A stretch of DNA of 64,000 nucleotides from Zygnema circumcarinatum SAG 698-1b (GCA_037447605.1 CM074813.1:558001-622000), one strand, 5' to 3'; shown: positions 31,683 to 45,023, counted from the stretch's first letter. A program made the numbers and translations. Notes: generated from the sequence alone by a model not told the origin.

Positions 31683-34600
31683 CTAGCATGCGCTGCCCTG
31701 CGGCACGCAGAGCTGGGCGGGCCCCGCCCCGAGGAGCTTTCGCAGCAGTTTGGCGGAGCAGGCGGTGCGGTTCATCTTCTTGAAGGTCAGCCTTTTGGTG
31801 AAACACTTCTTGAGGCTTGCGCAGCTGTCCTGTGCCGTTAGCTGCCGCGGCACCCCCTGGCAACCCGCCATGGCGCCCCCCAAAGGGCCCGCTTCGAGGC
31901 ACACCTGTTGCTCACAATTTCACAACCCACAAATTAAAAAAAGAAAAAAAAAAAAAAACCCAAAGGGGAAAGAAAAAGAAAAAGGGAAAGGACCAAGGAC
32001 ACTTACCAATGCAATATTATACGAAAATTAGGGTTAGGGTTAGGTTAGGTTCTGCGAGCCTCGTCCTCTTCCTCACCTTCTGCCCAAAAGACTTCGCGGA
32101 GACGTCGAATTCGATCCGTCCGCAATAGATTCCGGGATTGAGCGCATAGAACAGCGTTGCGTTTCCGTCCAAGTACGTGGTGATGATGTCAGCACAGGTC
32201 TCGCCCTCCGCCACGCCATGGAACAGCGTGCAGGGGCCCAAGTACAGGAGGGGGCCGCGCTGGAGGCAGATCTGCCAATGGGGGGAGGCCGGGCAGGAGC
32301 AACAAAATTGTCACTCCAAAAATATTTCGAAAAATATTTGAAGGAGAAAGTTTTCTTCCAAAGTTTTGGGGAGTTCGATAAGAGAGTACGAGCTTATCTG
32401 TGAGAGGTGTGCAATATTCGATCAAGCAGCAAGAAGAGGAAGAAAGAAAAGGTTCCATTTTGTAGTTTTGGTTCCGAGATTCAAGTCTCATAGATGAGAG
32501 AGCCTTGAAAAAGTAAAACTTTTGCTCATGATAAAGTCAAACAACCTTGACAAAGTCAACACCCTTGATAAACCAAACATCCTTGATAAAGTCAAAAAAC
32601 GCTTGATAAAGTCAAACATTCTTAATAAAATCAGACATTCTTGGTAAAGTCAAACACCGTGGATAAAGTCAAACACGCTTGATAAAGTCAAACACCCTTG
32701 GTAAAGTCAACTGACCTGCTGATAGGGCTCTATGAGGGAGCAGTTCAGCCCGGGATTGGGCGAGCCGGGGCCGTCCAATGGCGAGCTGAGATTGAACCTC
32801 TCCTCGATACTATCGCAGCTATCGTTCTGCATGCAAGAAAACATGTCAGATTCCCACTAGGAAAAAAACAAAAAACAAACAAATTTGAGTTTTTCTCTTA
32901 TATTTTTTCGAAAAAAAACTGAAATAGATGTCAGGAATCTAGAATAGAATCTCTATGGCTCTATCCATTTTCAATGAATTTTAGGGTTTTTAGGGTTCGG
33001 CCTGCATGCCTTTTCGGCCGCATAGACCAGCGAGCAGTTCTGCGAATTCGTGATGTTCAGAACGGAGGACGGAGGCACCATCGCTCTGCAGTCGATTTTC
33101 TGCATCCAAAAATATCCAGTCACATATTCGAGACAAACTTAGCAAAGAACAGAGTACAAAAAGAGCCCTTCTGGAATCTGTAGCAAAACTGAGATTAAGT
33201 TCAGAACCATGCAGTCCTATGGACTGTACCCCATGAATGTCAAATCATATCCACAGGGAGGGAGGGAGGGAGGGGAGGAGGGAGGGAGGGAGAGAGGAGG
33301 GAGGGAGGGAGGGAGGGAGAGAGGGGGGGAGGGAGGGAGGGAGGGAAAGATGGAGGGAGGGAGGGCGGGAGGGAGGGAGGGAGGGAGGGAGGGAGAGAGG
33401 GAGGGAGGGAGGGAGGGAGAGATGGAGGGAGGGAGGGAGGGAGGAAGAGAGGGAGGTAGGGAGATTATAGGGTTCTTGTGATTTTCAAAAACCCGGAGTA
33501 CCAAACCACAGAAACCCCAGAGGCCAGAAGTGTTAATATTTAACATTAAACGAGTACGAGTGATGACAACACATTACCGGATTTTGCCTCATGAATGTGT
33601 CGGCATCGAGTCCGTACACATTATAGATTACAGAGCAGGAGAGGTTGTACCCGGGGGGAACCACGAAAGATTTCAACCCTGTAAGGGCAGCCGCTGCACC
33701 GACCATACATCCAAACCCTAATTCCGCATCGTCAGCATTTATCTGAGCTTGCATGATGGCCTAAACCCTAACCCTAACCTAACCTTACCCTAAACCCTAC
33801 ATGTCTACTCTACTTTGCTTCAGTATACTTTACTATACAAATATACTTACTATATATCATACTAGCATAGCATATTATAGTATACTTTGATACTTCACAT
33901 TTCTTCCCTCCCCTCCCCTTTCCAGGAAAAGACAAGAAAAGGTCGGCGGGAGAAAGTGGGTCAACGCGCGCTGACCGGGGATGCAGGAGGCGTTGTCCGC
34001 GGGGTCGAGCGCGTAGCCAATGGGGCAGAGACACGTGTACGTGCCCGGGGCCGCCGCGGAGTCGAGACACGTGCCCATCTCGCAGGGGTTCGCCGTGTAG
34101 AAGGAGCAGGGGGAGGCTGGGGGGGGGGGTAGGGGCACAGCAGTAGGAAGAAATCGACCAAATTTCAACTTTATTAGGTATTTTTTTTTTCTGAGGTATT
34201 ACTCGAACCAACATGGCTTCATACCGTTCAAATTTCTTTAAAAGCTCTCAAATTATAAGAAAAAAAAAAAAAAAAACAAGTTGGTGAGAGGAAACCTACC
34301 CGGAGCGCAGGTTTCCGTGTTGTCGCTGTTGAGAACTGGAACGAAAACTGGTTTGCTGCAATTGCAGTGGTACGAATTTCCGTACGGAATGCACCGCCCT
34401 CCTCCGCAGGGGTTCATTGAACCGAGACCGATCTCCGTATTTCCGTTCGCCACCGCGTAGTTATTCCTATTGCAGGGGTCGGAATCTGCCAAAAAAATCC
34501 CCAAAAATTTCATCTCAAAATTCGTAATCGAAGTCTCAATAAAATAAAACCACCCCGGGAGGGTTTCGAAACTGGAAAGAAAGAAAGAAAGAAAGAAAGA

Positions 34601-43600: not shown

Positions 43601-45023
43601 CCAAGCTTTTAGCGCTGAAAACATGCAGTAAAAAAGAAAGCAAGCAATGGTGCCGTACATTGCTGCTCCGCCTTGAGGCTGAAGCTCGCATTGGAGCCAA
43701 TCCACGGAATTTTGAGCTTCACAGGCTCCCTCTTCTGCCATATGCAGAGAACAAAGGCGAAAACCGAACCCTTGCTTTTAGAAATAAAGAAAAAATAATG
43801 TCTTCAGATTTTTTTTTTCCTATTCATAATAATGTGATGAATATAATAGGCTTATCAACTTTTGAATATGCAAAAGCAAAAGCAAAAGCAGCGCGTGTGC
43901 GGATTTACAGGGTGACATGTGGCTCTTACTCGTGGTTCCTCAGCAGCTGCGCCGTCTGAGCGGTCAACCAGTTGCAGGGGATGACTAAGATTTGCCCTTT
44001 GGTCATTGGTCGAACCAACCAGGTCACCCATCAGTCGACCTGCACGAGCCAAGCGGTTAATCGGTCATGCTTGCAGCATGGACGGCAGATATTAAAAAAA
44101 AAAAAAAAATGAAATTGATAATGAATAGGATTTACTAGAAGCAAATAAATAAATGAAATATGTCCTCGCTCGCTGAGGCATTCATGAAGTGCTTGCAAGG
44201 TTTCAAATTTAAATTCAGATTCAGTTTAAATCTTGCACAAAATTCGCTGCCACACTCGCATGAAGCTTATGCTTCAAAGCTACAAAAATGAGCTGGAGAA
44301 TGCGAGCTCCGTATTCAGCGGGAAGAGGGAAGGCGAGGGAGTTAGGGAGGAAGAGAGGGAGAGAGGGAGAGAGGGAGAGGAGGGTCACAGAGACAGGGTG
44401 AGAGTGAGGGGGGGAGGGAGAGAGGGAGAGGAGGGTCACAGAGACAGGGAGAGGAGGGTCACAGAGACAGGGTCAGAGAGTGAGGGGGGGGGAGACAGGG
44501 AGGAAGAGAGGGAGAGAGGGAGAGGAGGGTCACAGAGACAGGGTGAGAGTGAGGGGGGGAGGGAGAGAGGGAGAGGAGGGTCACAGAGACAGGGTGAGAG
44601 TGAGGGGGGGGGGGGAGAGAGGGAGAGGAGGGTCACAGAGACAGGGTGAGAGTGAGGGGGGGGGAGACAGGGAGGAAGAGAGGGAGAGAGGGAGAGGAGG
44701 GTCACAGAGACAGGGTGAGAGTGAGGGGGGGGAGGGAGAGGAGGGTCACAGAGACAGGATGAGAGTGAGGGGGAGGGAGTGAGAGAAGGACAGACAGAGG
44801 GAGAGAGAGAGAGAGAAGGAGAGGAAGAGCGACGTGGACAGAGAGAGAAAGGGGTTGTTCTCAGGCCAACAAGTTTTGTTGACAGCTGGCACAGGATAAA
44901 TGCATTAAATTTAGAATTATAATACCCGAAAAAAATAAGCCCTAATGAGAAAACTTAAAAGATCGAACCTTCGGCGAAGGTGGCGCAGAGAGAAAGAAGC
45001 AGCAGCAGCAGCACGGCAGCCAT
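31683..45023 (-). CDS. Secreted mosaic protein: signal peptide - 9 hevein-like modules - Ser/Pro stalk - papain (C1A) protease - 2 EGF-like - 3 to 4 LysM-like modules (~1150 aa)
   Basis: Signal exon 45023-44969 ([18 protein letters not shown]). Hevein exons start at 43469 (partial), 43133, 42499, 42174, 41658, 41280, 40894, 40474, 39875. Pro-rich exon 38697-38254. Papain exons 38007-37819, 36950-36721, 36429-36289, 34871-34652 ([43 protein letters not shown]). EGF exons 34485-34300 and 34116-33976. LysM-like exons 33678-33578, 33099-33010, 32826-32716, 32271-32077, 31904-31683. Phases join throughout, except across the 100-N gap at ~43276-43375. Confidence 0.85.
32525..32712. repeat. ~19-bp tandem repeat (CTTGATAAAGTCAAACAC) in intron
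   Basis: About nine imperfect copies. Confidence 0.8.
34892..36094. repeat. 17-bp minisatellite (GGATCCACTGGGAGCCA)n, ~70 units, intronic
   Basis: Head-to-tail units with no spacers; variant units GGATCAACTCGGAGCTA and GGATCTACTGGGAGCCA. It lies between two papain-domain exons. Confidence 0.97.
37060..37800. repeat. GA-rich compound tandem repeat (units with GGGAATGCTAG / GGGAGAGCTAG)
   Basis: Alternating ~40-bp subunits repeated across about 740 bp of intron. Confidence 0.85.
39332..39726. mobile_element. hAT-type MITE (395 bp)
   Basis: TIR TAGGGATGG ... CCATCCCTA. Perfect 8-bp TSD GTGCCGGC at 39324-39331 and 39727-39734. Subterminal inverted AATTTACAAC / GTTGTAAATT. Confidence 0.92.
44360..44775. 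repeat. ~50-bp tandem repeat (core GGAGGGTCACAGAGACAGGGTGAGAGTGAGGG) in intron 1 of the mosaic gene
   Basis: About eight copies. Confidence 0.85.

Follow-up and report, generated by a model that had tools for sequence, protein, structure and literature searches.

A gene for a candidate secreted hevein-papain-EGF-LysM protease in Zygnema circumcarinatum, a head variant of an uncharacterised algal protease family

In a window of 64,000 nucleotides (nt) from Zygnema circumcarinatum SAG 698-1b (GCA_037447605.1 CM074813.1:558001-622000; positions are counted from the first letter of this stretch), reading of the DNA combined with scripted exon assembly delineated a minus-strand gene of 22 exons (E1 to E22) spanning about 13.4 kb. 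We propose, with a probability of roughly 0.6, that this is one gene encoding a secreted modular cysteine protease, that it belongs to a zygnematophyte family in which a variable head precedes a papain domain, two EGF modules and four LysM modules, and that the protein, whose own head has at least eight hevein-fold modules, would bind a surface and cut proteins there. Judged from its sequence, the gene does not represent a unique architecture but belongs, with a different head, to an algal protease family that is catalogued and uncharacterised; its hevein head is new with respect to the relatives that were fetched.

When joined, exons E3 to E22 (20 exons, 43133-31683, minus strand) give an uninterrupted reading frame of 1087 codons. 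Their splice sites are all GT-AG, with the single exception of a GC-AG pair at the E19 donor, and GC content at third codon positions (GC3) reaches 70% in the exons (84% for the hevein exons and 78-79% for those of the EGF and LysM modules), compared with a GC content of 47.5% in the introns. When relatives were used as tblastn queries, consecutive residues mapped to consecutive exons of the gene, and no second copy was detected within the 64-kb window. Every exon of the head has phase 1-1, in agreement with the phases of E1, E11 and E12, and the flanking genes lie outside the 31.6-45.1 kb interval. The gene is real and appears to be intact. The original prediction had joined more than 20 exons into one secreted protein of about 1150 amino acids (aa); this holds for the 1087 residues of E3 to E22, whereas continuity across an assembly gap near the 5' end is unproven. 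The predicted order of hevein units, proline-rich stretch, papain domain, two EGF modules and LysM was correct. Of the Pfam domains proposed for checking, PF00187, PF00112 and EGF were matched, but LysM (PF01476) gave no direct match on the gene's own pieces.

A search with the last protease exon against 1.84 billion representatives, followed by Pfam scans, identified many proteins in which this papain-EGF-LysM body follows an LRR (leucine-rich repeat) or legume-lectin head, and 287 of them reach E ≤ 1e-10. The proteins derive from eight Closterium strains, Mesotaenium endlicherianum and EukProt transcriptomes, and all are unnamed or hypothetical; examples are P0011 (CAI5959345.1), P0068 (GJP37037.1) and P0126 (Mesen1 ME000166S01720). 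In blastp the body of the Zygnema gene aligned with relatives over its full extent (P0006 at E 1e-135, P0018 at E 1e-116), at 29-45% identity over 450-640 aa, and it has the features that define the family, namely the FRYxSxGF extension, a C1A domain that lacks a prodomain, two EGF modules, four Cys-framed LysM modules and exon-by-exon collinearity. The Closterium and Mesotaenium proteins share with it the collinear body, the lack of an I29 prodomain and a proline-rich linker before the protease, but their heads consist of LRRs and/or legume lectins, and several carry Ser where the Zygnema gene keeps the catalytic Cys. Searches with hidden Markov models found no hevein unit in 179 relatives, and subsequently none in the 287, and PF00187 does not occur in the relatives' precomputed match lists.

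These results divide the claim that the architecture is new, which had been offered on the understanding that it would fall if the arrangement were common and annotated in related algae. We found no characterised protein with this architecture, but a body with an N-terminal head is common in related algae, where it is annotated as unnamed proteins (the 287 above), and the hevein head alone is absent from the public relatives fetched. Van Holle & Van Damme 2019 (PMC6362431, Supplementary Table 3) list C1A together with several LysM domains in non-vascular green lineages, and describe such architectures as not retained in vascular plants. In those entries, which stand in a table and come with no functional study, C1A and LysM are accompanied by an SRCR, galactose-binding, C-type lectin or fucolectin domain; the pairing of hevein and C1A seen in the Zygnema gene is not among them. 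In a profile search that combined the gene's exons with relatives, the top match, P0180, was rejected as an orthologue, being a tandem fusion of two bodies. We also note that EukProt assigns one family member (P0014 / P0154) to the vampyrellid amoeba Leptophrys vorax, an entry that is probably contamination from algal prey and not an amoeba gene.

The papain domain is encoded by E12 to E15. E12 (37819-38007) carries the family-specific N-terminal extension with its FRYxSxGF motif and the start of the mature enzyme as far as QGTC, E13 (36721-36950) the catalytic Cys in STCWVF (Pfam Peptidase_C1, E 1.1e-9), E14 (36289-36429) the middle of the domain (Pfam E 0.041; collinear with relatives), and E15 (34652-34871) the His in LDHSV and the Asn and Trp in RNSWG (Pfam E 2.2e-18). 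As predicted, the active site is intact: the C1A (PF00112) residues Gln19 and Cys25, both within QGTCSTCW, His159 and Asn175 are all present and align with those of relatives and of ficin, and the domain is apparently active. The protease profile of the family is closest to plant papain-like enzymes (ficin, actinidin and dionain), its match beginning at the mature N-terminus. With these and with EP-B2 the mature catalytic domain is shared (profile E 5e-55 to 1e-47), but the Zygnema gene lacks both I29 and ERFNIN, is flanked by lectin-type modules and starts its protease region with the family-specific extension of about 45 aa. In line with this, no I29 prodomain was matched in the gene's pieces or in 16 relatives, and matches to zymogen structures in the PDB begin essentially at the mature domain. 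This class of plant C1A papain-like proteases also includes the secreted immune proteases Rcr3 and Pip1. Among the relatives, P0087, P0105, P0077, P0070, P0109 and P0082 carry Ser at the position of the catalytic Cys (C-x-x-S-W instead of C-x-x-C-W), which suggests a branch that either uses a Ser nucleophile or consists of inactive pseudo-proteases.

Each exon from E3 to E10 encodes one complete hevein unit of 120-129 nt in phase 1-1, and the array follows a three-unit period of types B, C and A: E3 (43008-43133, B), E4 (42380-42499, C), E5 (42052-42174, A), E6 (41533-41658, B), E7 (41158-41280, C), E8 (40772-40894, A), E9 (40346-40474, B) and E10 (39753-39875, C). All eight hold eight Cys residues in register, as expected for the Chitin_bind_1 (PF00187) fold. 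Counting the fragment in E2, Pfam matched Chitin_bind_1 on seven of nine hevein pieces (E 2e-7 to 0.03), two of them, E5 with 31.3 bits and E8 with 29.6, passing the gathering cut-off of 27.8; E6 and E9 have the eight-Cys framework and no Pfam match. Thus, of the nine units originally predicted, eight are complete, but the ninth is truncated, with Cys1-5 only, and is not joinable to E3 as assembled. E5 and E8 are 98% identical over 144 nt (42050-42193 and 40770-40913), including about 20 nt of flanking sequence, while all other pairs of units show 52-72% nt identity and have different introns. Such a pattern suggests that an old periodic array underwent exon-scale gene conversion or a very recent duplication.

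A profile built from the nine hevein units matched pokeweed lectin-C, Arundo lectin, wheat germ agglutinin (WGA) and hevein itself (E 7e-15 to 8e-3). Tandem units of about 40 aa and the eight-Cys framework are shared with multi-hevein lectins such as pokeweed lectin-C, WGA and the Arundo donax lectin (E 7e-15 to 2e-8). The Zygnema head differs from these in that the aromatic residues that stack on N-acetylglucosamine (GlcNAc) are mostly replaced, in its use of one phase 1-1 exon per unit, and in the fusion of the array to a protease. In the hevein-extensin lectins of Solanaceae, hevein units are followed by a segment rich in hydroxyproline (Hyp) and Pro, much as a proline-rich stretch would follow the array here. 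The corresponding candidate linker in Zygnema is E11 (38254-38697; 444 nt, phase 1-1, 148 codons, of which 147 whole codons are read in frame), which is 65% Pro. Compared with the extensin pattern of repeated Ser-Pro3-5 and Tyr cross-linking motifs, this predicted extensin stalk has eight SP3-4 motifs and no Tyr, and the exon can be skipped in frame.

Downstream of the protease, E16 (34300-34485) encodes a first EGF-like module, which has six Cys and no Pfam match and aligns with the first EGF module of the relatives, and E17 (33976-34116) encodes a second, recognised by Pfam EGF (PF00008) at 25.3 bits, above the cut-off of 21.5. The tail then comprises the first half of LysM-like module 1 in E18 (33578-33678), the rest of module 1 together with the beginning of module 2 in E19 (33010-33099), the core of module 2 in E20 (32716-32826), the end of module 2 and all of module 3 in E21 (32077-32271), and module 4 in E22 (31683-31904), which ends in a TAG stop at 31683 and has no hydrophobic tail. 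The GC donor of E19 was adopted because it is the only choice that keeps the Cys-x11-Cys spacing of the family (the second Cys lies 12 residues on); an alternative GT donor was rejected, since it loses six residues and breaks this conserved spacing. The C-terminus had been predicted to be LysM, and the modules are LysM-like by family profile and fold model, although there are four Cys-framed modules and not one, and two of them are divergent. The aligned tail profile of the family matches LysM structures (E 1e-12). Module 3 matched the LysM domain of a chitinase-A (5BUM) in phmmer (E 0.0044), and module 2 aligns full-length to 5BUM. An AlphaFold2 (AF2) model of module 3 shows a beta-alpha-alpha arrangement, for which the best structural matches in VIA are nearly all LysM domains (Z 4.5, root-mean-square deviation 1.7 over 43 residues) and the sole Foldseek match in the PDB, also a LysM domain, falls short of significance (E 4.4). 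For module 4 there was no direct match in the PDB or Pfam.

A glycan-tethered extracellular protease is a plausible product of such a gene. Once secreted, the enzyme would be held on a surface of GlcNAc-containing polymer by its many low-affinity hevein and LysM modules, the candidate polymers being the chitin of chytrid or fungal parasites and possibly peptidoglycan. The proline-rich linker, probably Hyp-glycosylated, would space the head from the catalytic domain, and the papain domain would then cleave proteins on the bound surface, so that the protein would act as a bind-and-cut enzyme in extracellular defence or surface processing. If this function holds, the family would represent an unstudied arm of these activities in the sister lineage of land plants, in which lectin or receptor modules are joined directly to a protease, and it could reveal the arrangement that components of plant apoplastic immunity (papain-like proteases, LysM and LRR modules) had ahead of the origin of land plants. 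The present copy places hevein arrays among the exchangeable heads, and it displays how such an array is built, with one phase 1-1 exon per unit and a period of three. On its own the locus adds one more paralogue and is of moderate interest; it is the family as a whole that merits experiments.

Several observations weigh against this proposal. Of the residues that bind sugar in hevein (Ser19, Trp21, Trp23 and Tyr30 in hevein numbering), Ser19 is retained in seven of nine units, but a stacking aromatic occurs at position 21 in none of nine, at position 23 in four of nine (W, W, F and F) and as Tyr30 in one of eight, so that each unit has at most a single aromatic out of three. With these aromatics mostly replaced, chitin binding is doubtful for single hevein units, and the description of the head as made of established chitin binders was overstated even though the fold is kept. 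The docking on chitin or peptidoglycan that we infer is weakened by these degenerate units; avidity or the LysM tail may account for binding, or else the ligand may be a different one, the alga's own wall polymers included. Within that tail, modules 1 and 4 are divergent and were placed by family alignment alone. The missing I29 prodomain bears on how the C1A domain folds and is kept latent, and in an AF2 model of a relative's protease the core is confident while the N-terminal extension has a predicted local distance difference test (pLDDT) score of 34-50. E11 is the least secure exon, its inclusion not being forced, because E10 can also be spliced to E12 in frame, and the continuity of E1 with E3 is unproven, with a truncated unit at the edge of the gap. 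A database search with the most conserved protease exon returned no transcript of this gene copy (a single match, at 65% identity), the databases held no near-identical protein (best identity to any relative, 45%), and the literature yielded no paper describing the head-papain-EGF-LysM family, its binding or its activity. We note that the database blank is weak evidence, as the species' own data seem to be absent from the databases searched.

The same modules could also be turned on the alga itself, binding glycans or glycoproteins of its own wall or mucilage while the protease processes wall proteins during growth, division or conjugation. With the sugar-stacking residues degenerate, the ligand may be other than chitin, sister genes bear LRR or legume-lectin heads of other specificities, and the proline-rich linker resembles wall glycoproteins. 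We nevertheless regard such a self-directed role as rather unlikely: modules 2 and 3 of the tail look like the Cys-framed LysM domains that occur in plant and algal chitinases, zygnematophyte walls are not known to contain a chitin-like polymer, and the heads vary so strongly between paralogues that recognition of non-self seems the better fit. Carrying the bind-and-cut proposal further, one could imagine the family as a combinatorial, extracellular recognise-and-cut immune repertoire in the algae nearest to land plants, with interchangeable pattern-recognition heads (LRR and legume lectin among them) on a constant, prodomain-less papain-EGF-LysM chassis and this copy directed at chitin of chytrid or fungal parasites. 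This extension is speculative and rather unlikely; if true, secreted papain-like proteases, LysM receptors and LRR receptors, which are separate in land plants, were once fused in single secreted proteins.

It is also conceivable that the locus comprises two genes, the first a lectin of hevein units and a proline-rich segment, like those of Solanaceae, that ends by read-through after E11, and the second a separate papain-EGF-LysM gene. Read-through at the E11 donor would extend the open frame by some 29 codons, to a stop at 38168, no RNA was found that connects the halves, and the family includes head-less members, such as P0087, in which a signal peptide directly precedes the papain extension. 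Such a division is nonetheless improbable, because neither the 246-nt intron between E11 and E12 nor E12 itself offers the body an ATG or a signal peptide, the phases match over E10, E11 and E12, and transcript-derived open reading frames (ORFs) of relatives (P0209, P0018 and P0057) have head and body on one mRNA. As to E11 being an exon, CT-rich DNA is open in all frames, but the splice phase picks the one frame that contains the SP3-4 motifs, the periods of its tandem repeats are all multiples of three, unlike those of most intronic arrays, and transcript-derived relatives have short proline-rich linkers at the same place. No RNA was found for this gene copy, and that the hevein array and the protease share a single transcript is something we infer.

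The 5' end of the proposed single gene lies on both sides of the assembly gap. E1 (44969-45023, minus strand) provides a start codon and a typical signal peptide, and its phase-1 donor matches every hevein exon; an in-frame ATG upstream, at 45062, would add 13 aa. The nearest alternative, a signal-peptide-like ORF at 43568-43741, was rejected since its phase-0 donor is incompatible. E2 (43402-43469, minus strand) starts properly, after AG and in phase 1, and is closest to the B-type units (68-69% nt identity), but encodes only Cys1-5 of a hevein unit (Chitin_bind_1 E 2.9e-5, profile positions 1-23 only). Past Cys5 it diverges from all sister units over 26 nt (43401-43376), and an in-frame TAA stands 2 nt before the run of 100 N (43276-43375) that interrupts or follows it. 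No phase-compatible GT donor for E2 exists in the assembled sequence, and the 142 nt between the gap and E3 (43134-43275) contain no remainder of a hevein unit in any frame, which is why E2 cannot be joined to E3 as assembled. Since every head exon is phase 1-1, a direct splice from E1 to E3 is also in frame. Same-strand, same-phase hevein exons flank the gap on both sides, and the body encoded by E3 to E22 is unaffected whichever way the gap resolves.

The rest of E2 may lie within the unread stretch, for which the nominal 100 nt would suffice, and the B-C-A period, if it held, might predict a missing C and a missing A unit in the gap; alternatively, E2 is possibly a dead remnant, or the scaffold join possibly wrong. 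That the whole locus is a silent or decaying paralogue, or is partly mis-assembled, so that it is not expressed and has a damaged 5' end, would accord with the truncated E2, its stop at the contig end beside the gap and the lack of any transcript fragment found, but we hold this to be improbable in view of the 1087 open codons, the retained catalytic residues and Cys frameworks, the canonical splice sites, the GC3 bias of the coding sequence and the weakness of the transcript blank. Nor is the array a collapsed-repeat artefact, as its units share 52-72% nt identity.

Beyond the gene, an uninterrupted ORF of 526 aa with motifs of NRAMP/MntH-type metal transporters (48780-50357, plus strand) is divergently transcribed from the protease gene and is intronless amid an intron-rich region. 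An exact search with its sequence matched no public record, and its nearest homologues are zygnematophyte proteins. Exons of a LepA/GUF1-type translation GTPase at about 23.5-27.2 kb (plus strand) are convergent with the 3' end of the protease gene. Telomere-like (CCCTAAA)n tracts are present in several introns of the gene (39899-40072, 41705-41755, about 33760-33800 and about 32030-32060), and many more short tracts of this kind are scattered across the window. Finally, four introns are filled with long CT/GA-rich minisatellites (34889-36095, 37055-37803, 42507-42893 and 44347-44813), with units that include 17 nt repeated 72 times and 43/86 nt; these arrays are open in all three minus-strand frames and can be mistaken for coding sequence rich in Ser, Leu and Pro.

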